A stretch of DNA of 63,128 nt, filler included, from Reticulomyxa filosa (GCA_000512085.1; 14 parts of 14 records of this genome joined end to end with filler, not necessarily neighbours in it), one strand, 5' to 3'; counted from the first letter of the whole stretch, positions 2,541 through 32,489 are shown. Notes: generated from the sequence alone by a model not told the origin. A program made the numbers and translations.

Positions 2541-3087
2541 TCAATGTAACAATGAGACTAAAATAAATAAGTTGAAAAGTCAAGAAAAATTTCTAAATTA
2601 ATTCACTTTGAATTTTCTGTCAAGATAGGTAAAGTAACGAAATTTGACAATTTAGTTGAGTATTTATGATGTCAAATTGACGTTGATCAATTTAAGAAAC
2701 AGAGTTAACATTTTTTGGGATTAACAATCGCTCAGACAATAAAGGGATGATCCGTTTTTATTAAGTATTTAATCTTTTTGTTCTAGCACAGTACGTTAAG
2801 ATTAGGCCATTGTTCTTGCAATTGATATTTTGATGAACTTTTCAGGAGCAACATATTCTGTTACTCTTTCACTAACTCTCAATAAACACTTATTCCATAA
2901 CTGCAGCGATATGAGTATATAAAAAAACAACATAATAGCTTTTCTCTTGCTATTTTTATATGCAAAGGCGTTTTTTTAAAAATCGGTTCACGTTAAAAAA
3001 GAGTACAGTGCAAAAGTCTGTTAAAAAATAGTCACCCTATTTTCTTTTTCCACTCACTGACTTACCAGCATTTTAAAGTAAACACAG

Positions 3088-5123
3088 ATGGTTGAAATGT
3101 CGCAGTTCATAATTTTGAACAGCAATGTTGAAAATAAATTTCAGCGCTCCATTCCCATGAGCCACTTGGTGACGCCTAACGTTTGGCCATGCACCCTCGT
3201 AGATGCAAATTCGACAAATGCGATCATTGGTCACCAACCATCGACTTTTTCAGTGCAACCAATGGTAATATTGACCCCACAGCAGAGTATGTGTAGTTGT
3301 GAAAATAAATGTCCTGGTGTTGTTCCTCCACGGGAACAGGGCAGCAGTGGTGTCTCTCACAACAATTTGACGTATTCTCAGCTTTATCCCTGCCAAAACG
3401 CTCAAGATTGTGTGGATTTCTCCAAGAAAGGATCAGCATTCCTGATCGGTAACGCGAACCACTTTTCTTTGCTATGCCATGGCAGCAGCATTAATAAGAT
3501 TCCATCAAAGAAAAATTCAGAAGCAGAAACCCCTTTATTATGGAAACTCAACTTGGGATCCTCTACAAGTATGTATACTGAACCTTTCAGGAAGATTGTT
3601 GGCAATATCCATCAAACCAAAAGTAGTGAAGGAGAACATTGGGCAATGCACCATAACACTTATAGTGGGAATGCGTCTGCCAATACTGTACACGGAATGC
3701 AACCGATGTTGCAATGCGAAAGTATAAACACAACCACAGATACTATGAACATAAGAGCAGCCGATTCCAAAAAGATTTCCTTGTGGAATGAAAGTAAAAA
3801 TGAAGTTCTTTTATCCCTGCTCGAGGTTAATCGTGAGCTACAGATCCAAGATCCCGAACAATCGTTGCTGCGGCTAAATATTGGAACTAGTCCAAGCAAA
3901 AATCAATGTCACGACAATAGCATAGCTATTAACCCAACAAGTCTACTAAAAAAAAAAAAAAAAGTGGTCTTGCAACTATTAACAATTTTTACGTATACTT
4001 TTTTAAAAACATTTTTTGTATCAGGAAACGATAGTACAGTGGAAAAAAGTACACGAGTAAAGTGCAATAAAAACAGCGATGTAGAACTGAAATTACCAAC
4101 GAACTCTCCCGCAAATGATTATATAGGCGTAACTGATAAGAAATGGCTATGTAATATTTGCGGAAAAAAATACAAGTACATAACCAATTTGATAAGTCAT
4201 TTTGCAGTACATACTACAAAAGCTTTAGAATGTGGTTATTGTCACAAAGTTTAGTATCTTTAGATAAGGGAGCAGTGGAAATAAGAGAGATAAAATTGCA
4301 CATTTTCTGGACCTTGTCATAAAACATATGTACGTCTCATAAAAGGTTTTCACAAAGGCACTAAAAAAACAAAAAAAAAGGTGTAAAAATTGTATACGTA
4401 AGAGGTTTTGGGTATATGGGATGAACTTTGAACAGAAATTTGGTCGCAAAACAAATTATGTAGAACACTTACGAATACACACAAACGAACGCCCCTATAA
4501 ATGCCGCTATTGTGATAAAAGTTTCAAACAAAATCACGGGTATGAAGCTTGTTTTTACACGAATTCTCAGTACAAAATTTTTTTATTCGTGCTCATCCAA
4601 AAAACCTTTGCGACACTGGTTTTTTTGATCCAAGTTTTTTTTGGGGGCACACATTCCTTTAGCCTTGCATGAAATGAAAAAGACAAATAACGTTTGTTGT
4701 TTTTGTAATGTGTTTGACTAAACAGGTGGAGAGATCATGGTATGTTAGAGGAGATGCAAAATATACAACAAAAAATTTATATAGATTGTGCAGATAAAAT
4801 TTTAGAACTGTACTTTTGCCGTTGTTTCAATTTCTTGAGGAGCAAATTTCTTTTTTTGAGGTTAAAACAAAAAACTTTTGGAAAATTTGTGTGTGAGGTA
4901 CATAGAAAGAATACACACCAATGAAAAGCCACATGTCTGTGATATTTGTGGAAAGCGTTTTACAGTAAGACATAATCTAGTGGTACACAAAAGAATCCAC
5001 ACTGGGGAGAGGCCCTATTGTTGTGAATATTGCAGAAAACGATTCCGCCAAAAGTCAGCTTATAATGCCCATATTAAAAATGTTCACAAAATCACGAACC
5101 AAATGCGATTAAACGCAAAGTAA
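3088..5123 (+). CDS. C2H2 zinc-finger transcription factor (multi-exon, about 5 fingers)
   Basis: [49 protein letters not shown] and [12 protein letters not shown] are Kruppel-type fingers and linkers; low-complexity N-terminus. Confidence 0.9.
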
Positions 5124-5585
5124 AAGGTCTTTTTTTTGTCTTGTTCTGATCATTACTTTTGATTCCATTTTTTGTGCGTTTCAAATTACAAGGTTTTAGT
5201 TTATTTTTTCTTCACCCCGCATTTTTATGATCTTTTTTTAATTTTTATTGAGGACATGGTAGTGTTACTTGGTCCCTATATGTGGGCCTTGTTACTCGAC
5301 CGAGATTAAATTATTGCACAGGCTTGTAAATTATAACATTTTAGTGTTGTATCAAATTGCATAAACTCATGAACACAAGCAATATATGCACCTTTAACGA
5401 ACAGCAAAGTACTTGCTATAATCTAGATCGTAAAATAAATCTTTTAAACTAAATACTCCATAAAAATTACTTGCATGCATACCGACATTTGCAGAACTGA
5501 AAAGTACTTGGATATGTTTGCACAGTGAGCATTTCAAAAAAAAAGGGTTCATTCCCATTCTTTGTGAAGATTACGTGAAGCTTAA

Positions 5586-6476
5586 ATGAGCAAACCAGCA
5601 TCAGGAGGGATAGCGTCTTCACAAGACGCAAACGTGGATAGACGAAATCGTTTGCGTGAGCTAACATTCGAAACCATTGACTTAAAAAACGTTTGTTTTC
5701 CATACTTTTTGGATAAAGAGAACAGAAAGGGACGTATTACTAATCTAATGAAAACAAATAGGATCCTTATTTCCTGCGAAATCATTTAGGATCTTACGAG
5801 TGTCGTCTATGTTTGACATTGCATATGAATGAGGCTAGTTACCTGGCGCACACCGAAGGAAAACGACACCAGCACAATTTAAAACGAAGAGGTGGAGTTT
5901 AAAATACTTTGTTATAATTTCTTTTTAATAAAAAGGATAAAAAATAATGTATTCTCAAAACGGCGAATCGCAAACATTTTTTATTTAGCACCTTTTTTAC
6001 GTTGAGAATACGAAAATAAAACACTGGATTTTATTTCTTTTCAAACAATAGCTGCTCGTAGAGCCAAAGAAGACGCAAATAACCCCAACAAACCAGCACC
6101 TGTACGTTCTAAGATTCTCCCACGCAGAACACAAAAGATTGGAACTCCTGGCTACAAAGTTGTCAAACAAAAAGATGTAAGCACTGGCCAATTGTCTTTG
6201 CTGTTTCGTATTCATTACAGTGAAATTGAAAAAGATTTACAACCTCGACACCGCTTTGTCAGTACATTTGCACAAAAGGTAGAAAGCCAAGATAAAAATT
6301 ACCAGTACGTGCTGTTTGCTGCTGAGCCATATGATACAATTGGCTTTAAAATTCCAAATATTCGAATTGACAAAGATCCAACCAAATTGTTGACACATTG
6401 GAATCCAGACACCAAAGACTTTACACTGCAAATGTTTTTTGAAGCCACTGCCGACAATTATGATAAATACACATAA
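5586..6476 (+). CDS. SF3A2: splicing factor 3A subunit 2 (SAP62/Prp11), 3 exons
   Basis: DRRNRLRELTFETIDL, then DPYFLRNHLGSYECRLCLTLHMNEASYLAHTEGKRHQHNL (U1-type Zn finger, about 5762-5890), then KIGTPGYKV, PRHRFVSTFAQKVE and YQYVLFAAEPYDTIGFKIP. Confidence 0.93.
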
Positions 6477-17173: not shown

Positions 17174-17282
17174 CCCCCCCCTCGTTGTTATTGTTGGTGT
17201 CAATCATTGTTTTTCGTTGTTCGATCGGGACGTATGTATGTGTGTATATACATATACATATATGCATATACTGTGTTGCAAC

Positions 17283-17881
17283 ATGGAAGCGGACATACCA
17301 CTTTTTTAATATGTTTGTGCATTCGTTCGCACTCCTTTTTTTTGTTTTAATAGTTGTTGTTTTTATCACGTCGTCATATGTATATGTAGTATATATTTTT
17401 TATACATGTGTGCGTGTGGGCAGAATTTGTTAATCAGCTCATTTTGTACCAAAAAAAAAAAGTATACGTATCACTAGCATTTGTATGTCACTCCACTTAT
17501 ACAAAAAAAAAAAACAACAACAAAAACTAATGCTATCCTAAATTGTACATACTGCTTACAGTACACTTTTTTTGTCCCTCCTCCTCTCTTTTTGTCTCTC
17601 TTTTTCAATTTGCTGTGGCTTTAAACAAAGTTGGAAACTGCAAAAAGATGTTGATATGTGTTCCAGTACATCGGGTTTCCTCCCGGATTCATCATCATGC
17701 TCGTTCCCATTTGTCCACCAAACATCGGAGTCTCCATGGTTCTGGGTAGATCTGTTCCCAGTGGTAGAGGAAGAGGCTGCGTCGCCTGCCTTTGTGCGTC
17801 TATATTTGCTCTTTCATTTTTAGTCCTATCATCCATCCCTACCATCATATTTTGAGCACCATTTACTAATGAATTGTTCAT
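17283..17881 (-). CDS. 5' part of a multi-exon gene; possibly a TALE-class homeobox protein truncated by the contig end
   Basis: Low-complexity first exon MNNSLVNGAQ...; later exon KTKKRSANECTNILKKW followed by a GT donor, resembling TALE homeodomain helix 1. Confidence 0.3.
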
Positions 17882-18174
17882 TGTTTATTTTTTCTTTTTG
17901 GCAAATGCCAACAACTACGAATTGAATTTGTTTGCTTTTTTCCTTTTTTTTTACTACATATAAGGAGTTATCATCCAATTATATAATTAAAGGCCTATTT
18001 CAAAAAAACCACATCACAAATGAAATTTTTTTGCTGTAGCGTTGCAATGTTGACATCTTCAAAACGGACAAGAAAAACATTTGACGAAGGAGAGCAAAAA
18101 AAACTCCTTGTTGATCATTCAATTTTTTTGGCTCATCTTCCAATATTAAAAAAGAAAAGAACAAGCCCGACAAC

Positions 18175-19273
18175 ATGACAGATTTTTTCGAAGACGACAA
18201 TACAAACCAAACCTACGAAGAGAGAAACCCATACGAAAATGGGGACGTAAACGACGCGTTTGGTAATGCTGAAGCAGTCAATAATCCCAAAAATGATAAT
18301 CAAGACGACATATTCAATGATGTAGAAGTTCGACAAGACTCTAAGCAACCAGAAGATCAAGAGCCTACTGTCTTCAGGTTCACCCAAAATAATGACAACA
18401 ATACCAACAAAAAAAAAACAATTGACAATAAAAAAAAAATCATTAACACGTATAAAAAAACCTGTGTCATTTTTCCGTAACATCAGCAAAAAAAAAAACT
18501 ATTTTTTTTTAAAATTTTTTTCTTCTCAGCAAATTGTCTGTCCTGATTTGAACACCAAACAAAAAACTTGGATGTTTGATAAACTTTTGGGATGGCAGTG
18601 TAGATAGACCACGAAAACACAAAAACACACAAATAAACACAAACAATGATTGGGACACAGTGTATGGCTGGAATCACATCGCCAAATGTTGGAAGAGAAA
18701 GCCAAACAAGAAAAAGACGAACAAGTTAAAACCTTGACAAAAAAAACATGTTTGAGAGGAATTGATATCACACGTAGTAAGATAACCAAAAAAAAATTGA
18801 ACACAAAATAAAACTCTACAAAACACATCAGGACAAATTACAAAAACAAGCGAAAGATGATATACAAAAATTTCATGATGATCGCAAGAAACGAATAGCC
18901 GAAGCAAAAAAACAAAACAAGTATTTTTTTTGCCTATGTTCTCAAAAAAAAAAAAAAAAAAAGATTGTTTGAATGGACATCTGGCGTCACACAACATCTT
19001 CTCATTACGCCCCCTTTTTTTGTTGTCAAGGGTGACGAGGGATTTTTGATGTTAAAAAAAGTCTTGTCTTTTTAAAACATTAGACTGAAGGAAGAGCAAT
19101 TGCGTGAAGATTTGCAGTCGGTGTTTGAACATGGAACAGTATGGGAACAAGTGTCGAGAATGGTGAATTTGCAAGACTCCACCGAAAATAAGGGACCATC
19201 TGGGGACCAAGAAAGAATGAGAAAATTGCTCATTGATTTGAAAAATGACAAAAAGATAGACAAAAAAACTTAA
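18175..19273 (+). CDS. CLC: clathrin light chain, multi-exon
   Basis: Acidic N-terminus; WLESHRQMLEEKAKQEKDEQ; AKDDIQKFHDDRKKRIAEAKKQN; last exon GTVWEQVSRMVNLQ...DQERMRKLLIDLK matches the CLC C-terminal pattern (WE.V..L.....RM...L..LK). Confidence 0.8.
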
Positions 19274-19643
19274 ATTTTTGGATTGCGACTTAGTTCGTTT
19301 TCATTTTGCACCTTATCAACCCAATGGTTTTGTGTGTCTTTTTTAATTTTGTGTGGATTTGATAACACAGTTGTTTGTGTTATTTGTTTTTTTTGTTTTC
19401 TACAAGACTTGTGGAAAATTAAATCAATTTCAACTTTTTTTTTATATGGCTCTCAAAGGATATTGAATTGACTAACAAATTTTTGATTAAGTGATTCTTT
19501 TTCTATTAAAAAATGGAAGATAGCATCGCAACGTGCTGATATAAAAAATCGACGAAATTGACTCCTTTGCAAGTAGTCGTCACTTTGACGAAGCAAAAAC
19601 AAAAATTTTAAAAAAGGGACTTTTAAAAAAAGCACCCGATATA

Positions 19644-21863
19644 ATGGGAATGTTTTCGGACAAAGCAATTTTCATTTGTTATGTTGCAATACTGGGGTTT
19701 AAATTTTTTGTATTCCTACCCATTTCGCTCTACGTTTTGTACTGGTATCACAAATTTCGTCATGGTAGGTCTTTTCTTAGTGTGTTTAGTTTTTGTTTTT
19801 AATGGTGCATCTTTTTTTTGTTTGTGGATATGTACTACTTAGTTCAATATCTAAAACGACGAAGGCCAATGGATTGTATTTTTCTCTTTTCATTTTGCAT
19901 TTTTTTCACGTGCAGTTACGTTTGACTGGGATTGACTGATTATCAAACTTGGAACAAAAAAAAAAAAAATGGACAATGTTCAGGAAGCGGGCCATCTGAA
20001 AAAAAAAAAAAAACAAAACAAACAAAAAAAAAATAACAAAAGTTCCAAGCAGTTTAGAATATGCAAGGAATGTCCCAATAGTGGTGATGAATGCAATTCG
20101 AACACTGGAAATATTTATATTGAGTGGTGTGATTTGTCGAGCATGGCTGATGACGTACGGATGGTGCAATACAGAACGTATACTAAAATGGGAATGGATG
20201 AAGCAGCTCAATCCGTTTTACAAAGACTGGACATTGAAGTATCGTCAGACGTTGGGCAACGGGCGTTTTTTATTATTTTGGATGGTTGTGTGTTGGATAC
20301 TTTTATTTCTGATTATCAGGTCCGATTGCAAAGTAGAAGATAGGAGGAGGAAGAATGAGGGGGGGGGTGTATATGTGTATGTTCAAGAGTCATAAAGTTG
20401 TAATTCCCAAAAAAAAAAAAATAAAAAAAAAAATGAAAATGTTTGCATAAAATATAAAAACTACAAAGTGTGATATACTTAAGCACTGGATACGAATTGG
20501 ATGTAATGCATGAGAATCTGCTATTACAAATAGAAACCCAAGTAGTGATAATAACATTGTTGGGGATAGCGCTGTGGATCTGTCGCAAATGCAATGTATA
20601 TATTCGTCAGACGTGTGACGTGTTCGACTTGAAAGGGGAAATTACAGTGTTCATTCGGATTTTAAGCATCGAAATGATGATCATTGCACTGTTGCCACAA
20701 TGTTGCTTGCTGCCATATCGCTTGGAACATGGCCTCTACACCCACCGCGAAGTTGTCAATGATAGAAACACCATGCAAAATAGTCACTGGATCCATTGGT
20801 ATCGCACCCACTCGCAAATATCCGACGAAATGGCCGACTATGTCTTCATCTATTACATCCTCAAGAACACTATCCACGTGTTCCTGCTCATGGGCATTAT
20901 CTATTGCAACATGTGGAAGAACTTGCAACGTGCCATTCTTTATGCAAAGTCTTTGCAAAGCACCATTGGGTACATTTTTTGATTGTTGTTTATCACAAAC
21001 ATATAACATGTATATACATGTATATACATATACGTATATATGATGAAGAGGTAAGGGGGGGGGGGGGGGACAAAACAAAACAAAGACAATATGGAGAGAT
21101 TCCGATTATCCCAGCATCTGTGAATACCTACATTTTTTGTCGAAGGATGCGTAGTTGGAAAGTTGGTAGCGTGAATGAGGTATCAACTCAATTTCAAATA
21201 CAACAACAACAACAGCAACAACAGCAGAAAGATATTCGAAATGGGGGTCACAATGATAATGACGACAGTGACATGTACGGACAACACAACGATACCTGTT
21301 GCATCCAAAAGAAAAATCAAAGTGCGACACAGAGATCACAATTGGGGTGTTTGAAAGGATTCGAATATCTCATCACACGTTGCGACGGATTGGAACTGTT
21401 TGCCAACCATCTAGAGTCTGAAAATTCCGTCGAAAACTTGTTGTTTTTAATTGATTATTTGAAGCTTAAACAATTTCTTTCACATTTTCAGTTTGTTTTT
21501 GTTTTGTTTTGTTTTCTCCGCCATAAATAAATAAATAAACAAACAAACAAAAAAATACAATATTAAGATTTTTTTTTTTTTTTTTATTAAAAAAAAAAAA
21601 AAAGAATATTAAATAAAATAACATTTGGATGGAAATTGCCACTATGTCGGAATACGCTGTCATTACATCGGTTTTATCATCAGATGCAACATCGCAACGA
21701 AAAGTGTCCTTTTTTGTTGGAATATTCCCGGCAAATGGCAAATGCATCCACCACATCCAATCCCTTGGGGTTGTATCTACGAAAAAGTAATAGCATTCCT
21801 CTTACAAATGTCTATGACAACAACAGCAATACAACTACTGGCACTACTGTTACCACTATCAAT

Positions 21864-21908
<45 letters not shown>

Positions 21909-22032
21909 AACAATAGCAATAGCAATACATTGCTAAAAGAAGCCAGTGAAGAAAAGAAGAGACGCTGGTGGTGGTCCCCGTCAAGCACAAGTCATAGCAA
22001 TCGCGAGGACACGAGCGAAGAAGAGAAACAGC

Positions 22033-22066
<34 letters not shown>

Positions 22067-23629
22067 TGTGACAACACAACAGCACGGACAAACAAGTGCT
22101 GGAATTGGATTTGATCACAATTGCTGTTATTACGATCGACAAAATTTTTTGGAATTGTTTTTATACTTGTTCGACGAGTTCATTGACAAAGACAATGTAT
22201 CCAACTTTGGCTTGTCTGTTCCCTACATGCTATATGACCAAATCGAAACGGTCATCAAAGAACAGGCTGTCCCTCTTTTGAAGCGTATCCGCGCCAACAA
22301 TCACATTGACTTGGTGCTCAACTCCAATTCCGACCTCCCTCACACTACGCAGTTCAATGACAATGACAATGAGCACGACATAGACATGGTCACGAAAAGG
22401 CTTTCCGCCAAAAAAGAGCCGTATCAAACCAACAAAAGTGAGTTGGAAAAAGCGCAGGTCGACAAGCATGTTGGTCTTGATTTGCCGTTGCAACGCACGG
22501 AGAGCGACAAGCGTGACAACAAAAAGCGCTCCACCAACAAACGCAAGTCCAATTGGCTGAGTGTTCATTACCATATCGACCAAACCACTAATGTCAATTA
22601 CTCGGATGAACTAAGCCAATCTCAAGGTTCTCGTTCGCAATTCACAGAAACGTTAAGATTTTAAAATATCATTAACATTTTAATATAATACATATATATA
22701 TATATATTTATACATAAATATAAAGGGAAAGCAGAATGATCCGAGAATTAACAAATCCACTTCGATCTTCCGTTGACTTTTCTCGTGACAACTCGTCGCT
22801 GCCTTCTTGGGCTGGTCGTGTCCACATGCTGATGACTCCGACATTGGAGGTGATTCCGAGCACCAATGAAGACAAAAAAAGACGAGGCTCGGAGCCACCC
22901 GAGGAGACCAATGGTCAGCTCCAGATCATCGACAGAGTCGGCGGTGATCCTGAAATAGTGTCTTTTCATTTTGTGGATCAAGATCAAAAGGAAAGTGGCA
23001 TTCGCGACCAACCCATGGGCGCTGTGCCCATCGAGCATCACAATAGTGATGTCCCCATTCTCTACCACGTGGCAGATACAATTGAAATGATGACCATCCC
23101 TCCCAACGCCAACGTGCTGCAGTTACAATCACAGCGCGAACAACTCCAAATATCGCAAAAACAGATGGAAGACACTGCGCAAGTGCTTTCGTCGAAAACC
23201 AGGCCCGAACAGAGCAAGAAACATGAATTGCTTATTGGATATGACAGTAATAAACAACGGGGTGATATTCACTTAAATCATTCCGATTATTCAAATAATA
23301 ACAATGATAATAATAATGATAATAATAATAATAATAATAGTAATAATAATAATAACGATAATAATAATAATATGAATAATAGCAGCAATAACAATAACAG
23401 CAATAAAAAAGATGTGACGACAATGGAATGGGATGAAACCAATGTCGACCTGCTATTAAAAAAGTTGGTTCACTTGTTTGACAAAGTGGTAGAACAACTC
23501 ATCGATGCCATGTATTGTGATAGTTACAAACGTTTTATGAACAAAAGAGAGTTTGACCAATGGATTCAATGGGTCCGTGACCCATTTTGTCCTGACGCCG
23601 ATTTACCACCGTGCACTCAGCCTTTCTAG
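19644..23629 (+). CDS. multi-pass membrane protein with a C-terminal RGS domain (7TM-RGS-like)
   Basis: First TM MGMFSDKAIFICYVAILGFKFFVFLPFSLYVLYWYHKFRH followed by YLKRRRP; more TM helices at 20470-20980; RGS motifs GLELFANHLESENSVENLLFLIDY, LFDEFID and LIDAMYCDSYKRFM. Confidence 0.75.
21861..21925 (+). repeat. (AAC/AAT)n coding microsatellite (poly-Asn)
   Basis: Direct reading; a (CAA)n poly-Gln follows at about 22028-22064. Confidence 0.9.
23294..23405 (+). repeat. (AAT)n coding microsatellite (poly-Asn)
   Basis: Direct reading. Confidence 0.9.
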
Positions 23630-24318
23630 TCTTTTTCTTTTTTTTTTTTTTTTTGTGTTTTTAAGAAAGTAAAATTTGACAACAAAAACTTCAAAATAAT
23701 ACAACAAACAATCGTTTCTTTTTTTTGTGGTGTGCGTGTTTTTTTGTTTCGTTTTTTGTTAAAAAAAAAGCAGGGTTTTCTCTTGTGGTTGTGTTTTGGA
23801 AATTAAGATCAACTTAAAAAAAAATTTCTCTGTTACAACGAATGACACAAGAGCAAGAACGCAAATCCCTTATTCATCCTTTTTTTGTGACACTTTGTTG
23901 ATTTGTGTGTTTTGTTTGATTTGATTCGATTTGGTTTAGTTTGCATTTTTTGTTTTTTCGTGCTGTTTTGTGTATGTTTAGCAAAAGAGGGAATTTGTTT
24001 GTTTTTTTTTTTGAATTGCCAATTTCCGCATATGTACAAGGACTATGTAACTTGCCCACGTATAAATTGTCAAAAATGTGGGCTGCAGTTTTCTTTTTTT
24101 GTTCCTTTTTGGTGAGAAAATAAAATTAGTTGTTCGTATTGTTTTCAATCTGGGACAATTTGACAATTTCAAAGATGCGCGCACACATTGTTCTACAGGA
24201 AAGGAAAAATATAACTTGTTTTTTAACCAAGTTTTTTTTGTCCCTACAAAAAAAAATTGAACCTACAAGTTCTTTGTTATCCAACTTTATGTATTCGCAA
24301 AAGATTGGTGAAAGCACA

Positions 24319-27300
24319 ATGGCATTTGTTAGGAATTGGAATGCGAATGGACATACTTACACATACGAGATTTCCAACAAAGACCACGCTGGCCCGACTG
24401 AACGGAGCACCACAGCGTACAAAAAAAAAGGCATAGGCAACAGCAGAACGAAGTTGTGTGGAGGAATGCAGAAAGAAACTGGTGAACCAACAGCAAATAG
24501 CTTCAAAAATAACAAAGACCCTTATGAAAGGGAAATGAAGGTGTTAATGACAATGTGCGACGAGTTTGTTAACGAACAAGAATTGCGACAAACATTGGCC
24601 CAGTTCGAAGGCAACATTCCATTGGTCATTGATCGCATTGTGTCTAAGATTATGTACCAACATGTATAACAACTTTGTACATTTTTCTTTACTTTTCTCT
24701 TAAAAAAGAACAAAAACAAAAAATGGGCACTTGTTTTTATTGTATTAGAGCGCGAACGAAGAAATGGAATCGAAGATTAAAACGGATAATTTTGGAAGAA
24801 GCCTTTCAGCGAGCACCTCACAAAGAAGTGTAAATATGTCTTGAAATTTTTTTTTTTTTTTTGGTTTGTTGAATTTGTAGATTTGCAAGTAAATAAACAA
24901 ACAAACAAAAAAAATAATGACAAAGCTTGAAAAAAATGAGATTGACAACGACCATGATAGCAAACTGGATGAAGTACGATCTAATGTGAAAAAAGAAAAA
25001 GAAAAAGCAGGAGTAGGCGAAATCAAGCTGGGAATCAACTTGCAAGGCTCTTGCACAAATGCGGATTGCTTGGCTGCAAAGGCAACACTACCAGTGTGGA
25101 TAAACCATGGATTTGTGGAAATGTCGTTGGATCCTGAAAAATCCCTACATTTTGCTTGCCCTGATTGTCGGAAGGAGACAGTGGATTCGATTACCAAGAT
25201 AGTGATTTATAATGCAGAACACTCCATCCACGCAAGTGGAGACACGCAGCCTGTGCACGATAATCATTACCAATGCTCGTACACAATTAAGCCTGGCCTT
25301 TCGTATAAAGTGAAGGCCTCGAAAATCAGACAGCATGCAACCAGCTTGGAAGATTTGAGAGAACGGAGTGAACAGGCAATGAACAGCGTCGAGATAACAA
25401 ACTTGATAGTGAAGTTAGAAAAATATGAAATCACAGTTGTGAAACCACCCAAATTAAAAGGCAATGATCGCTTGCTGGAGAAGATTCGAAGCGATTACAG
25501 TGGCGATTTTAATCAGGCATTTGATATTGGACGCTTCACCATTTTGTGTGACAATCCAACCAAATTGCAGACCGCTGTGGTCGTCATGAAAAACGCAGAG
25601 GAGTTTAATTTGATTGTGTCCGAAGATAAAGATTTCTTTGACAAACAATCAAAAACACATCATCGCTTTCATAACATTAAATTATATGTTCCAAAGCATG
25701 ATGTCTATATTGAAATGCAAGCCACTTTGAAAAACTTTACAACATTGGAAGGATATACTGTCATTGAAAATCCGAAATTAAGCCATTTGTTTTATGAACT
25801 TATCAGGGCATGGAAACCAGATAATTCATCAAGAGAAGAGGAATTGAAACAAGCGAGTGATAAAACTTTGACCAAGATCAACGATGTCATTTGTGAGTGG
25901 ATTAACGAAAGCGAGATCAAAAAAATTGCCAATCGCTACAAACCGCACTCGGATATTGGGATATTAAAGCCACCACAACTGAATAATAAGAGTGAGTTAA
26001 AAGACATTGACACCGATGTGCCTTTAAAATTGGCGCAATTTTTGTATAATCAACTTTGCACATTCAGTCCAACAAAATTGAAAGGCAAAGCTATTTATGT
26101 GATTCTGTTTGAATATTACAAGAAACACATTGTAAGTGAAAAACATTTGGCAACTTGCTTTGAGGTTGCATCCACTTTGCAAGAATCAAGAAAGCAAGAA
26201 CTTGAAGAGGATGTGGCAATATTGCAAGCTCTTAGTACATATACACCTTTGCAAGCGAACAACTATTTTTATACCGACAATGATGATCAACCTGATCATG
26301 GATTTGATTGCTATCAACATGTCATTGAATTTTTAGAAGAAAAAAAAGATGAACAACAAAGACAAGTGATGATATTACAAGGGAATTCCGGATCAGGGAA
26401 AAGCTTGTTTTGTCGTTATTTGGAGGAGCATTTGTGGAGCAATTATATCAATGGCTTGACAAAGTCCATTCCTGTTTACATTTCATTGCCAAAATGCTAC
26501 AAAAAAGAGTACGAAAGTGATGTTATTGCACATGCATTACAAGTGAAACATATTAGCAAGGAAATGATAGAAGTCATCCGCGAACAAATGTCTTTTATAT
26601 TGATCATGGATGGGTTTGACGAGATATTTGATGCATATAGCAAAACAGATTGCAATGAAAAATTTTTTTACAATCGCTTTCATTTAAATAAATGGCATGC
26701 AAAGGTTATTCTTACTTGTCGAAGTCATGTTCTAAATGAAAATAATACTAAATCGACTTTAATTGGATCTAACTCCAACAATGCCACTGCTATGATTTAT
26801 TTGTGGCCATTTTCTTCTCAACAAATGCATGGTTATATTGAAAAATTTGTAAAACTGAGAAAAAATAATGCAAACAATGACAATTGGACAGTTGAGCAAT
26901 ACGAAGAGACTTTAAAGAAGTATCGAAATCTGCACAAAATTGTGCAGGAACCATTCTTGCTCCGTCTCATCTTAAGCGTACTACCATCTTTAATTAAACG
27001 ACATCATGTTGGTGCCAACATTTCAAGGGCACAGGTATACGAAGCCTTTAATGAACAGTGGTTCGATCATCACATTCAAAATATTTCCACAAAATTGGCG
27101 GAATTACGAATACAAACCAATATCAGGAAGATGAAATTATCACTTCAAAGCTATTGCCAAGATTTAGGATTTGATATGTTTTTGCATGGAAATCAAGTCG
27201 CAACTGAAAATAATTTGGAGGATGAATATAAAACCGAGTCACTGAGGACAAAAGATATTTGGGAAAAATATTTTAATGGTGACAGTGTGGCCAAATATGT

Positions 27301-29743
27301 ACTTCGAAAAGTTGGTGAAAACCAATACACATTTTTGCACAAATCATGTCAGGAATATTTTGCGGCACATAAAATTATTTGTGATATCCTTTCATGGAAA
27401 CAACCTACCTTTGATGATGACCATAAGCAATTTGAAACACAAATTCAGCAGCAAAGTATTAACTGCAAGTTATTGAACGAAGAAAATGGAATTATTCAAT
27501 TTATCGTCGAAAGACTTCGAGAAAAAGATTCTGCTTTTGATAACTTGGAATATAAGCTATTTCAAATTATTGAAGCGTCCAAAAATCTTAATACTATTAA
27601 TATCGCGGCCGCCAATGCAGTAACCGTGCTCAATTCAGCCAGGATTAACATACATCACAAAGATTGGAGTAATATCAAAATTCCCTATGCTATACTCGAC
27701 AATGCCTTCCTGGAAGGGACCAATTTTGCAAACGCAAATTTGAGTAATATAAGTCTTGCTCAGGCATTCCTTAATGAAACTAATTTTCAAAATGCTGATA
27801 TGACAGGCATATACTTTGGAGAACATCCAAATTTGGAAGGACATTCAGGAAATGTGACATCAGCATATTTTTCGCCAGATGGACAAACCGTTGTATCATG
27901 TTCATGGGACAAAACAATTCGATTATGGGACGCGGATTCTGGACAAGAGTTACAAATATGGAAAGGACATTCCGATACTGTCACGGAAGCACAATTTTCA
28001 CCAGACGGCAATACTATTGTATCATCCTCATGGGATAAAACAATTCGGTTGTGGGACGTCAAGTCTGGTCAAGAATTACAAAAATGGAAGGGACATTCGA
28101 ATTACGTCTCTGGAGTGCAGTTTTCTTCAAATGGTCTTACCATTTTGTCTTGCTCTTTTGATAAAACAATTCGAATATGGGAGGTGGCGTCTGGAAAAGA
28201 GATTCAAAAATTCCAAGGGCATTCAGAAAGCGTCAGAGCAGCCCAATTTTCTCCAGATTGTAATACTATTGTGTCATGTTCTAACGATAAATCGATTCGA
28301 ATATGGAATGTCGCATCAGGGCGAGAATTACAAAAACTCGTAGGACATTCAGCAAATGTGTTAGATGTTCAATTTTCTCCTAATGGCTGCTTTATTGTAT
28401 CTGCGTCTGAGGATCAAACCGTTCGAATTTGGGATATTATGTCCGGGCAACAACTACAAAAATTGGAAGGACATTCAGAAGGTGTTACAGCTGTACAATT
28501 TTCACCAGATGGAAGAAACATTATTTCGAGCTCGCTTGATAAAACTATTCGGCTTTGGGAGGCACTTTCAGGTCGGGAAATCCGAAAATTTGAAGGACAT
28601 TCAAACGGCTTTCGAGGGCACGTTTTTCACCCGACGGTCGTATTATCGTAACATGTTCTTTTGACAATACTGTTCGATTATGGGATGTGCCATTACACGG
28701 AAAATCACAAAAGGTCGACGGACATTCAAACTGGGTAGGAGGGGTACAATTTTCACCAGACGGAAATACCGTTATCTCGTGGTCATTTGACAAAACTATT
28801 CGAATGTGGGACGCGAAAACAGGTAGAGCAATACATAAATTTGACGGACATTCACGGTGCGTTTCACAAGCACAATTTTTTCCAAATGGACATACTATTG
28901 TATCTTGTTCATATGACAATACAATTCGATTGTGGGATGTCGACTCGGGTCGAGAAATCCAAAAGTTAGACTTGCATTCTGCTCCTGTCGGTGTAGTTGA
29001 GTTTTCGCCGAATGGTGAAACACTATTATCTTGTTCGTATGATCAAACACTTCGATTATGGGACACAACGTCCGGACAATTGGTACCAAAAATAGAAAGG
29101 CATTCCAAAATAATTTCAGGTGCACATTTTTCACCTGATGGCCTTACTATTCTGTTGTGGTTCGAGGATCAAGTTGTCAGAATATGGGACGCTACATTAG
29201 AAAGAGAAATCCAAAAAATTTGAAGGACATTCTAATACTATTTTATGCGCTACATTTTCACCAAATGGGAAAATGATTGTGTCTTGTTCGGATGATGAAA
29301 CCGTTCGATTGTGGGACGTAGAATCAGGAAGAGAGATACGTAAATTGGAAGGGCATTCCAATTATGTAAATTATGCTAAATTTTCACCTGATGGTAACAA
29401 AATTGTATCATGCTCAAAAGATAAAACAGTTCGATTATGGGATGTCTCTTCAGGAAGACAGATACAAAAACTGGAAGGCCATTCAAATTCTATATATGAA
29501 GTGCACTTTTCTCCGGATGGGCGTTCAATTGTGTCTTGTTCCCTTGATCAAAGCGTTCGATGTTGGCAATTGGAAACAAATTCAGCTTTAAGTCTTGAAG
29601 CACCGGCGAAATTGAAATGGCAGGCCGGCATCCAAAACTGTGGTTTGTCAATGGCAAATAGTATTTGGAAAGGAGTACGTGGCTTGAAAAGCCAGCAAGC
29701 GCTACTTATAATGCAACGTGGTGGAACCTTGCAAAAAACTTAA
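24319..29743 (+). CDS. NLR-like STAND protein: CUE/UBA-like + Cys4 Zn domain + RelA/SpoT-like nucleotidyltransferase + NACHT + pentapeptide repeats + 14 WD40
   Basis: Exons approx. 24319-24663, 24750-24831 and 24926-29743. Motifs KLKGNDRLLEK, DIGRFTI, KDF, HHRFHNI and IEMQATL (25442-25730); Walker A GNSGSGKS (26381); Walker B ILIMDGFDE; ILTCR; FLHKSCQEYFAA; pentapeptide repeats about 27660-27820; GH-WD repeats 27835-29570. Two 1-nt frameshifts at about 28618 and 29217. Confidence 0.88.
27835..29570 (+). repeat. 14 tandem WD40 units with a 126-bp period
   Basis: Consensus xGHSxxVxxxxFSPDGxxIVSCSxDxTIRLWDxxSGxEIQKL repeated every 42 aa. Confidence 0.92.
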
Positions 29744-30647
29744 ATCCATAAAATTCTCTGATTTTGTTAAAAACGTCCATTTTTTTGTATATTTTGCAGG
29801 AAAATGTGTAATTATTGCTTGCACATTTTTTGTTACGAGATACATTTGAAAAATAGCTGTGTTTTTTGCAGCATTTGGGATAACCCTGTTTTGTACAGTC
29901 ATTTTTGCTACTAAATGTCATTTTACGAAGACAAGCAACTTCAAATATAAATGAAAATCTAGATATCATGAATTGATAAACTTTTGAATGATAAAATTAG
30001 TGTTTCACGCATTTTTAGTTTACATAGAACAACACTGAAAATAATAAATACGTATCAAAAGGGGAAATTCGTTAAAAAATTAACACTGTATCTCCAAAAG
30101 CGACACGATTAAAGACAAACAAAAGCAATAATTAAAGCAATAACATTATCCCTAAAAACCTATTTTTTAGTGAGAGAATAACTTAAAATTAAAAAAAAGA
30201 GAAAATCTGAGTGTCAGCTGTGGCTCGTCGAAGCTTGTTCTGACGAAAACGGTGTGTAACGTATGAACTTATTCGAAAAATGTTACTGCCTAAACAAGGA
30301 CATATGCATCTAAAAAAATAGTAATGCAACTTTTAACCAACCGTATCAATTCAGGTTGTAGACTAACAAAAAATTAACCTTTTTATTTTCCTAAACATTT
30401 TATTCGTTCATTGCCGAACAAAAAAGTAATACAAAAACTGAATTGGAGAATGCATCAAATTTTCGGTTTCTAAAACGTCTCTGTTGAAGACTTTTGGTCA
30501 AAATTCTTATTTTGCTTAAAGATCATTCTGAAAAAGCAAAATTGTGGACATTGGCAAACATATGTCTGTTGAACGTATTGCGACACTAGTGCATAAAGAG
30601 GAGCAAGCAGATTGAAAAAGAGGGGAGGAAAAAAACCCAAAAAAAAG

Positions 30648-31778
30648 TTAAACAAGTTGACAGCCACATTGGCTAGTATTTTCTCCTTGCGGTGAAATAT
30701 TGGCGACAGGTTTAACGTCTTCCAAAAGTGACGGTGAGTCTAATATTTTTTCAACTAATTCATTGAACGCATCTGTTACTCCTTGTCTAGTCTTTGCCGA
30801 AGCTTCAAAAAATAGCATCCCATTAGCTTCAGCAAATTTGCGTCCTTCATTCCGAGATACTGTTCGATTTTTTCCTAAATCGATCTTATTGCCTACCAAC
30901 ACCTGTTTTGTTTTTCATTAACAAAAAATTGAATGAAACTTTTCTAAAAAAAGATAATGCATAACTTAACTTTAATGACGTTACTTTTTGTTGTGAACAA
31001 GTCGACTTCTTTTAGCCATTCTTTTACATTCTCAAATGTCTCTTTTCTTGTTACATCGTACACTTTTTTAATTCAAACCAATCCGTTTCCAATGTTTTAT
31101 CCATTTACACATCATATATATTATGTTTGTATAGAAAATTAATCACCAACATACAACTTTATCAAAAAAAAGTTTTATTTCGTCAGAATAAAAATAGCAA
31201 TTCATTTATTTAATGTAATTGTTTGAAATGCTGAACGCACCTAATATTACTCCTTGTGCGCCCCGGTAATATGCGCTGCCAATCAAACAAACAAAATTTA
31301 AAAGAAAGAAAAACTTTTATTCGTACATAAACATTGTCATGTATGGATTGACAAACTCTTGATTTGTAAATGTAACAAAAGAAACCTGGTGAGTGTTCTA
31401 AATCTTTCCTGTCCTGCAGTGTCCCAAATTGTTAGTTTGATTCTTTTCCCACGGACAGCTACTAATTTTACTTTTAAGTCCACTCCGATTGTCGCTCTTG
31501 AATCTTCATCAAACTCTTCTGACGTAAACGAAAGCTTTTTGTTTACGTTTTTTTTGAATTCGTCTTCCTTCCTTTTTTTGCAAACAAAATGTGTGCCTTA
31601 CTCGTCAAACTCATACCAGAAGACATGTTTTTCCAACTCCACTGTCGCCAACCTATACCCGAAAAGCAAAAACGCTATTCTAAAAAAAATAATTCCATTG
31701 GTTGTTTTAATTTGTTTTATTTGTACCAACCAACAGAAGTTTGAGAAGATGATCGTGAGTAGCACCAGGAATGGCCAT
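30648..31778 (-). CDS. RAB18: Rab18 small GTPase with several short exons
   Basis: [76 protein letters not shown] and C-terminal CGCQLV. Confidence 0.9.
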
Positions 31779-32489
31779 AATCTATGTGAATTATATTAGT
31801 TTTATATTAGCTTTTTCGCTTCCTTTTTGAAAAATTAAACAAGACGTACCACAAGTCTTTTTCTTGTCAAAATCAAATTTAAAAAAGATTCGCAAAAATT
31901 TCTGTGGTTTTTTTGGTGCTGTTTTAATTCAAACAAGAGTAATCCGAAATATTGTCCGCAGAGAATGTTCCGTCGAGGCAAAAAAAANNNNNNNNNNNNN
32001 NNNNNNNNNNNNNNNNNNNNNNNNNNNNNNNTTAATTAATTAANNNNNNNNNNNNNNNNNNNNNNNNNNNNNNNNNNNNNNNNNNNNCAGTGGAGGTTCT
32101 ATTGAGACAATAGCACATATATACTTATATGTTGAACATAAAAGAAAGGAAAAAATTTTACCTTATGGTGCACAGTTTTGCAATGCAACGCTCGTATTGC
32201 ACAACCACAACAACAAGTAGTGCAGTCATCCAAGTTATTCAATAATTTGTGCACTTTGTTCCGTTTCAAGCTCCACACGTATACTATAAGCAATCCACAA
32301 CCAAAAGATAATGTCTATAATGAAGAAACAATAATAAAAAAAAGATAACTTAGCAACATGATATGGCCGACGTGTAGATTTGCTGTCACTTGAATTGTTT
32401 GTTATTTGTGATGGAACATTTAAAGTATTGTTGCCAGTGAAGGATTTGTAATGTATATTTGCTGGTGTTTGTGTCGGAGCTGGGGCAAA

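Follow-up and report, generated by a model that had tools for sequence, protein, structure and literature searches.

What would a receptor of a syncytial foraminifer do with an enzyme of the kind that makes bacterial alarmones? The question is raised by a gene of Reticulomyxa filosa located at positions 24,319 to 29,743 of the DNA analysed here (the window; 63,128 nucleotides, consisting of 14 parts of the genome joined end to end), within a piece (17174-31987) that is an AT-rich eukaryotic contig. The main open reading frame (ORF) of this gene (24917-28651, plus strand, 1244 residues) is identical to the R. filosa protein RFI_29183 (P0002), which the source databases label merely as a 'hypothetical protein' or a 'NACHT domain-containing protein'. 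The order of domains is as follows: CUE/UBA-like exon, Zn beta domain, RelA/SpoT homolog (RSH) synthetase, NACHT, pentapeptide repeats and 14 WD40 repeats. Judged by this composition, the gene product is a receptor of the STAND/NOD-like receptor (NLR) type, and its putative enzyme occupies the position of an effector.

The RSH domain ahead of NACHT

An earlier interpretation, made from the DNA alone (the sequence-only reading), had pointed to an RSH-like segment between an N-terminal Zn domain and the NACHT. All the motifs quoted there were found: the RSH-like stretch at nucleotides 25442-25730 (residues 176-271), the NACHT motifs and the N-terminal segment with four Cys. The RSH-like stretch includes KLKGNDRLLEK (residues 179-189), DIGRFTI (203-209), HHRFHNI (248-254) and IEMQATL (265-271), and KDF is also present.

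RFI_29183 matches the Pfam RelA_SpoT model (PF04607) with 18.8-19.1 bits (E about 0.002), the gathering threshold being 27 bits, and the R. filosa RSH-NACHT family lies mostly under this cut-off. The same model matches 57 of the 58 paralog domains at E<=0.1 (best 3.9e-7), and a precomputed PF04607 match exists for the paralog P0001. The NCBIfam and PADLOC libraries gave no match for the RSH domain.

Profile searches led further. A profile of the 58 R. filosa paralog RSH domains (alignment A1) had a single RSH match in the PDB (E 0.011), namely Tas1/Apk1 (6ox6), the (p)ppApp synthetase toxin of the Pseudomonas aeruginosa type VI secretion system (T6SS). Searched against 1.84 billion representatives, A1 found about 40 distant relatives beyond R. 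filosa fragments, with E values of 1e-10 to 1e-3. An alignment of 31 of them (A6), certain members of which exceed the PF04607 cut-off, was joined to A1 by hhalign over 179 columns (99.8% probability, E 3.8e-29). In turn, A6 matched in the PDB Tas1 (3.7e-30), YwaC (6e-12), RelP (7e-9), RelQ (3e-7) and Rel (3e-6).

The AlphaFold2 model of residues 130-349 reached a predicted local distance difference test score (pLDDT) of 80.5, while that of residues 20-349 reached 86.7, with a predicted template modelling score of 0.80. In a Foldseek search of the model against the PDB the best 50 matches were all RSH synthetases, with Tas1 in the first place (E 3.5e-7). VIA-align, a structure scan independent of Foldseek that covered 48,161 representative PDB chains, placed RSH proteins in all of the best 11 positions (Z 8.4-13.8), generic nucleotidyltransferases reaching at most 8.1. 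The Z scores were 13.8 for SAS2, 13.3 for Rel, 12.8 for Tas1 (172 residues), 12.5 for RelQ and RelP, and 12.0 for CapRel.

As family models, profiles and structure constitute three independent lines of evidence, the resemblance to RSH proteins is real, and it is almost certain that residues 130-349 adopt an RSH synthetase fold fused ahead of the NACHT. The proposal of such a domain N-terminal to NACHT-WD40 is thus borne out by Pfam in the paralogs, by the profile chain, by Foldseek and by VIA-align; the structure search that the sequence-only reading had suggested, directed at an RSH or pol-beta nucleotidyltransferase fold, returned the RSH fold.

The conservation of catalytic residues was counted in the 58 aligned paralog RSH domains. 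K181, D203 (the Mg-binding Asp) and R206 are kept in all 58; E266 (the catalytic Glu) and Q268 in 57, K189 in 56, R185 and Y293 in 55, and H290 in 54. The catalytic Asp and Glu, which the sequence-only reading had regarded as retained, are therefore also retained among the paralogs. All nine residues, from K181 to Y293, align with the motifs of Tas1, RelP and RelQ, and in relatives of 20-30% identity these K, K, D and R never vary, with E and Q conserved in at least 90%. Median identity between paralogs is 80% in the RSH core, compared with 57% in the Zn domain, 61% in the linker, and 58% and 51% in the two halves of the NACHT region. The RSH core is thus the most conserved segment of the protein, which argues for the constraint of an enzyme over a relic. 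The donor-ATP chemistry looks intact, the acceptor being uncertain, and we consider it fairly probable that the domain is catalytically competent.

Kinship with Tas1 and the predicted output

The fold alone leaves a choice among several RSH enzymes. At the sequence level the domain belongs to a Tas1/Apk1-like clade and not to the generic RelA/SpoT (p)ppGpp synthetases. It shares with Tas1 a block of the form K-x3-R-x2-E-K-I-x2-D-Y-x-G-D ... D-[IL]-x-R-x-T-I, which reads KGNDRLLEKIRSDYSGDFNQAFDIGRFTI in RFI_29183 and KSRERAMQKINNDYKGDPTKIKDLARNTI in Tas1. In both proteins the catalytic strand bears E-x-Q without the canonical R-T (EMQATL in RFI_29183, EIQVNS in Tas1), the next helix bears H-x2-Y-E, and the Tas1-type insertion ahead of this helix is partly common to both. 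Through the A6 bridging profile, Tas1 outranks the next PDB chain by 18 orders of magnitude.

Tas1 makes pApp, ppApp and pppApp from ATP and kills through depletion of ATP and ADP (PMC10083569). The catalogued Apk1 homologs include effectors of extracellular contractile injection systems (eCIS) marked by DUF4157 (PMC12691689), and three of our distant relatives (P0109, P0127 and P0146) are bacterial polymorphic toxins with eCIS_core, which fits that catalogue. Given the membership in the Tas1/Apk1-like clade, synthesis of (p)ppApp that depletes ATP is easier to justify as a guess than signalling by ppGpp. The RSH-type domain of the sequence-only reading stands, but it is not a generic (p)ppGpp synthetase.

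Based on these observations, we suggest the following course of events. By analogy with established NLR behaviour, a ligand would be bound by the two WD40 propellers, and oligomerisation driven by the NACHT would release or assemble the N-terminal enzyme. The enzyme would then move pyrophosphate from ATP to an acceptor 3'-OH, most likely that of an adenine nucleotide as in Tas1. (p)ppApp would build up while ATP drains, and the affected part of the syncytium would be arrested or killed. Before the trigger, the enzyme might be kept inactive in cis by the upstream Zn beta domain, which we put forward as a hypothesis only. There is precedent in CapRel and in the Tas1-Tis1 pair, where autoinhibition or a blocked active site has been described.

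That RFI_29183 is an NLR with a Tas1-like nucleotide pyrophosphorylation output that drains ATP seems to us, on balance, the best account. Its parts differ in strength. A role in immunity or allorecognition, argued from analogy, has a little better than even chances, whereas the adenine nucleotide as acceptor, likewise taken from analogy, is a tentative assignment that could well be wrong. More doubtful is the wider proposal that in R. filosa, and perhaps in other protists (e.g. the source of P0137, see below), an expanded set of NLRs executes its response through a Tas1-like adenosine 3'-pyrophosphokinase encoded by the eukaryote itself.

Several points weigh against this account. The first concerns the acceptor loop, in which H248-H249 replaces Gly-Tyr (GYRD in the wider family, GYSG in Tas1): at position 248, 57 of 58 paralogs carry His, and at position 249 there are 50 with His and seven with Tyr. 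As a consequence of this replacement the acceptor specificity, and possibly the activity, may differ. Moreover, the RFI_29183 copy scores below the Pfam gathering threshold, and the structural search cannot tell Tas1 apart from SAS or Rel, their Z scores lying within about 1 of each other. The sensor repeats of this copy are interrupted by two frame changes, which may mean either that it is a pseudogene or that its assembly contains errors. Finally, we know of no activity, product or phenotype for any member of the family or for its fungal counterparts.

The same evidence has to be weighed for other outputs. The domain might be active and make a signalling nucleotide, e.g. (p)ppGpp, which is read downstream, rather than depleting its substrate. 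This option, the first in the sequence-only reading, has been discussed in fungal reviews (PMC10197012) and agrees with the RSH fold, with the complete set of donor-ATP and Mg motifs, and with structural Z scores to the (p)ppGpp-making SAS and Rel that are as high as those to Tas1. By sequence, however, the domain is far nearer to Tas1 (3.7e-30 versus 6e-12 with the bridging profile), which is also the sole direct match, and the GYxSxH and ExQxRT signatures are not kept, the family having HHRFHN and EMQATL instead. Nor is a receptor known in this lineage that could read such a signal; we regard a signalling role as improbable.

We also give little credence to a tRNA 3'-CCA pyrophosphokinase (like CapRel, FaRel2 and PhRel2) that would stop translation when the receptor fires, even though tRNA is a universal target and the mechanism would be workable in a eukaryote. 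CapRel (7ztb) gave the longest structural alignment (183 residues, Z 12.0), the toxSAS enzymes with tRNA activity have the same fold (PMC11782079), and the altered acceptor loop is compatible with a non-nucleotide acceptor. On the other hand, the sequence profiles barely detect CapRel or FaRel2 (E 0.12-0.18, against 1.5e-28 for Tas1), and the partly shared insertion of Tas1 type before the HxxYE helix signals kinship with the Tas1 clade and not with CapRel/FaRel2.

A third possibility is that the domain has become a pseudo-enzyme, i.e. a nucleotide-binding or structural module for oligomerisation or recruitment of an effector. The sub-threshold Pfam score of RFI_29183 and the loss of the acceptor-loop Tyr in 51 of 58 paralogs would agree with this, as would the window itself, which contains no adjacent immunity or hydrolase gene of the kind that a constitutively dangerous enzyme might need. 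NLR autoinhibition, however, removes the need for an immunity gene, and the residues for donor ATP, Mg and catalysis, retained in 55-58 of 58 paralogs within the most conserved core of the protein, fit an enzyme better than a scaffold; a pseudo-enzyme is accordingly not a likely outcome.

Least probable of all is that the family is a non-immune, lineage-specific expansion of STAND signalling proteins with RFI_29183 as a decaying pseudogene, for although the WD40 array contains two frame changes and many database paralogs are partial models, the breaks lie in homopolymers with intact, in-register repeats downstream, and in fungi and bacteria, conflict systems are typically recognised by such large, diversified families of NACHT-repeat proteins with enzymatic N-termini of toxic type (PMC4986451; bioRxiv 10.1101/2022.07.19.500537).

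Gene model, accessory modules and relatives

The features of the gene are collected in Table 1.

Table 1. Features of the RFI_29183 gene, with positions counted from the first letter of the window (aa, residues of the main ORF)
Feature	Position	Strand	Basis or remark
Probable upstream exon, CUE/UBA-like three-helix module	24433..24663	+	BLASTP to 27 paralog N-termini, E down to 3e-13
Putative phase-0 GT..AG intron	24664..24925	+	joins CUE-like exon to main ORF
Zn-binding beta-rich domain, fold unclassified	24986..25303	+	aa 24-129; C46, C51, C81, C84
Probable Tas1/Apk1-like RSH synthetase (nucleotide pyrophosphokinase) domain	25304..25963	+	aa 130-349; core motifs 25442-25730
Helical linker between RSH and NACHT	25964..26365	+	helices in models
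NACHT NTPase core	26366..26851	+	aa 484-645; Pfam PF05729 E 1.4e-8, 35.2 bits, cut-off 26.7
Pentapeptide-repeat segment	27689..27823	+	Pfam PF00805 E 3.4e-6, 26.9 bits, cut-off 20.2
14 WD40 repeats, 42 aa each, in three frame pieces	27833..29596	+	Pfam WD40 E 2.7e-75; last piece 9e-30
First frame change, T homopolymer inside WD40 repeat 7	28623..28627	+	yields stop at 28649-28651
Second frame change, A homopolymer between WD40 repeats 11 and 12	29213..29218	+	yields stop at 29221-29223
C-terminal tail (48 aa) and stop codon	29597..29743	+	translation

The N-termini of 27 paralogs show homology to the last 78 residues of the ORF at 24130-24669 (alignment A5). This ORF is thus, by homology, not a separate gene but probably an upstream exon, and the start at 24319 chosen in the sequence-only reading was sensible. 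There are two candidate in-frame starts, 24319 and 24466, the latter being a Met conserved among the paralogs. Pfam CUE matches 13 of the 28 members of the upstream module (best E 2.3e-4), and its best PDB profile match is the UBA-like region of USP25 (E 0.066); we tentatively describe the module as CUE/UBA-like. It would be joined to the main ORF by a putative intron with GTATAA after the codon 24661-24663, a T-rich tract, and AG at 24924-24925, no earlier acceptor being possible because of an in-frame stop at 24890.

The Zn beta domain is kept in 55 paralogs, including all the full-length ones, with two Cys invariant and two nearly so (alignments A3 and A4). It was modelled with eight strands and pLDDT >90, and it has neither a Pfam match nor a meaningful sequence match in the PDB. 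Its structural matches are weak (Z<=6.2), the list being filled by the co-searched RSH domain, and its neighbours in feature space (Atlas) are all unnamed eukaryotic clusters. A complex prediction of the Zn beta domain with the RSH domain scored 0.16, which is evidence neither way. The paralog P0001 (RFI_08856) carries two Zn beta domains (residues 24-114 and 392-497) before its RSH domain, which indicates that this module duplicates independently of the enzyme.

The NACHT retains intact motifs, namely Walker A GNSGSGKS, Walker B ILIMDGFDE and also FLHKSCQEYFAA, and the NACHT-associated region extends to about 27688. The WD40 repeats suffice for two seven-bladed propellers. Tandem Repeats Finder described the array by a period of 126 bp with matches of 70-76%. 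Across the 14 repeats the scaffold is nearly invariant, and the variation is focused at unit positions 7, 9, 10, 18, 25 and 35, a pattern that resembles the one described for the repeats of fungal HNWD NLRs.

Both frame changes in this array are single-base events, and three-frame translation showed that the WD40 unit goes on without loss in the adjacent frame. When the first break is bridged with an X and the pieces on either side of the second are joined directly, all repeats after either break are intact and in strict register. In the database searches, the CUE-like exon, the main ORF and the two later WD40 pieces each served as a query of their own. The position in homopolymers and the intact downstream repeats fit an assembly error or a very recent change. 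Introns, as assumed within the array by the public model, were rejected, since the repeat register runs exactly into the neighbouring frame at both sites. The public model of RFI_29183 therefore needs correction at three points: it starts at 24917 and omits the conserved CUE-like exon, it spans the first frame change with a false intron that deletes one WD40 repeat, and it stops at the second frame change, by which three repeats and the tail are lost.

The neighbourhood of the gene is eukaryotic. Upstream, on the plus strand, there is apparently an RGS-domain gene (21360-21527 and 23402-23626), whose N- and C-terminal RGS halves (Pfam E 0.007 and 0.017) lie about 1.9 kb apart and are separated by low-complexity coding sequence rich in poly-N/Q/T or by introns. 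An exon on the minus strand (30648-30902) matches PF00071 at E 1.4e-14 and encodes the C-terminal third of a GTPase of the Ras family (Rab-like). Bacterial contamination was rejected on the grounds of the AT-rich contig and of these two neighbours, the Ras-family exon and the split RGS domain.

The count of paralogs that the sequence-only reading had called for gave at least 68 R. filosa clusters: in a length-restricted search, at least 68 clusters (90% identity) shared residues 120-470 at 54-75% identity, and all of them came from R. filosa. A search of representatives adds many shorter R. filosa fragments. The regions N-terminal to the RSH domain differ in length among the paralogs. In P0063, an R. 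filosa protein named 'vcbs repeat-containing protein', the Zn-RSH unit (residues 704-921) follows about 580 unrelated N-terminal residues with weak transmembrane-like Pfam matches at residues 389-550, and a NACHT is not annotated. P0063 may be anchored in the membrane, or its gene model may be a chimera.

Among the distant relatives, the metagenomic protein P0137 (positions 2745-6257 of an ENA contig, locus L001) combines ankyrin repeats, a Tas1-like RSH domain and a NACHT. It has the look of a second, independent architecture of this kind, and it means that the order RSH-then-NACHT is not exclusive to R. filosa; a homolog search with P0137 found only P0137 itself. In another group of relatives (P0109, P0125, P0129, P0130 and P0141), several proteins have two tandem Tas1-like domains per chain. 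The fusion partners include eCIS_core with a calpain-type protease (P0109), DUF285/BspA-like repeats (P0130 and P0135), and TPR with C1 (P0141).

Novelty and comparison with known systems

RelA_SpoT as an N-terminal effector of fungal NACHT-WD40 proteins was reported in 2014 by Dyrka et al. (PMC4986451), and later surveys treat the fungal RelA_SpoT NLRs as a canonical but minor class (PMC12258605, PMC9815663), described as 'minor yet intriguing' and as uncharacterised (PMC10197012). The sequence-only reading had thus overstated its novelty, as this domain combination is already listed as a rare fungal NLR class (PMC4986451, PMC12258605, PMC10197012). What is new is that the RSH domain is of the Tas1-like subtype, that CUE-like and Zn beta modules are present in addition, and that the family belongs to a rhizarian and has expanded so strongly there. 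Our literature search found no paper that combines Reticulomyxa with NACHT.

NLRs with enzymatic death domains (TIR, PNP_UDP) have shown that the destruction of essential nucleotides is a frequent killing mechanism of immune receptors across life. The TIR domain acts as an NADase and PNP_UDP as a nucleosidase, and the output proposed here for R. filosa would be comparable. To our knowledge, the RSH-type effectors of fungal NLRs have been listed for a decade, never characterised and rarely noticed, and we are aware of essentially no described immune system in the lineage of this giant foraminifer. If our account is true, (p)ppApp synthesis with the collapse of ATP would constitute an innate-immune or allorecognition output of a eukaryote, and the domain would be the first (p)ppApp synthetase of a eukaryote, with polymorphic toxins of bacteria as its probable source. 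In comparison with the fungal examples, the R. filosa family adds at least 68 members, a visibly stronger constraint on the RSH core and a specific tie to the ATP-depleting Tas1. The domain might therefore be helpful as a concrete, easily expressed test case for alarmone-type pyrophosphokinases as eukaryotic immune executioners, and it provides a rhizarian data point on how often eukaryotes have built NLRs from parts of bacterial conflict systems.

Of the known systems, Tas1 is the closest solved protein by sequence, at an identity of about 17-19%. It is a secreted, PAAR-linked bacterial effector with a separate immunity protein, Tis1, whereas the R. filosa domain is internal to a eukaryotic NACHT-WD40 protein, and the acceptor loop has G-Y in Tas1 and H-H in R. 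filosa. Neither a delivery domain (PAAR, MuF, LXG or eCIS) nor a cognate immunity gene accompanies the RSH domain, which is located inside the receptor; the neighbours in the piece are the RGS-like gene and the Ras-family exon.

The small alarmone synthetases (SAS) RelQ/SAS1, RelP/SAS2 and the exported SaSAS (5ded, 6ewz, 6fgk and 8vx3) have the same single-domain synthetase fold (Z 10.9-13.8), with the catalytic Asp and Glu at the same positions as in the R. filosa domain. They are free-standing, bacterial and often tetrameric enzymes with the GYxSxH and ExQxRT motifs, and the R. filosa family resembles them in sequence solely through bridging profiles.

CapRel (7ztb) offers a likeness of another kind, as its RSH toxin domain is part of a single-chain immune sensor and is held in the off-state by another domain until a trigger arrives, which is what we propose for R. 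filosa. CapRel is, however, a small bacterial phage-defence protein, a toxSAS fused to its antitoxin, which lacks a STAND NTPase and acts on tRNA by pyrophosphorylation. Regulation lies with a C-terminal pseudo-Zn-finger domain, and the sequence match to R. filosa is marginal (E 0.12).

The HET-E and HET-D proteins of Podospora (HNWD) resemble RFI_29183 in the receptor part: in both cases a NACHT is followed by a long array of highly similar 42-residue WD40 repeats that vary at few positions, and large paralogous families occur in a syncytial organism. The effector of HET-E/HET-D is a HET domain and not an RSH domain, and the role in allorecognition, which is conjectural in R. filosa, has been proven genetically there.

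The nearest in overall plan are the fungal RelA_SpoT-NACHT-WD40 NLRs, compared here by their description, which have the same three domain families and the same tripartite logic; both groups are known from sequence alone. The fungal proteins are rare (<1% of annotated N-terminal domains, with 17 in Sordariales) and were detected by the Pfam model, while the R. filosa family differs from them in its size of at least 68 members, in its additional CUE-like and Zn beta modules, in its pentapeptide segment and in belonging to a different supergroup.

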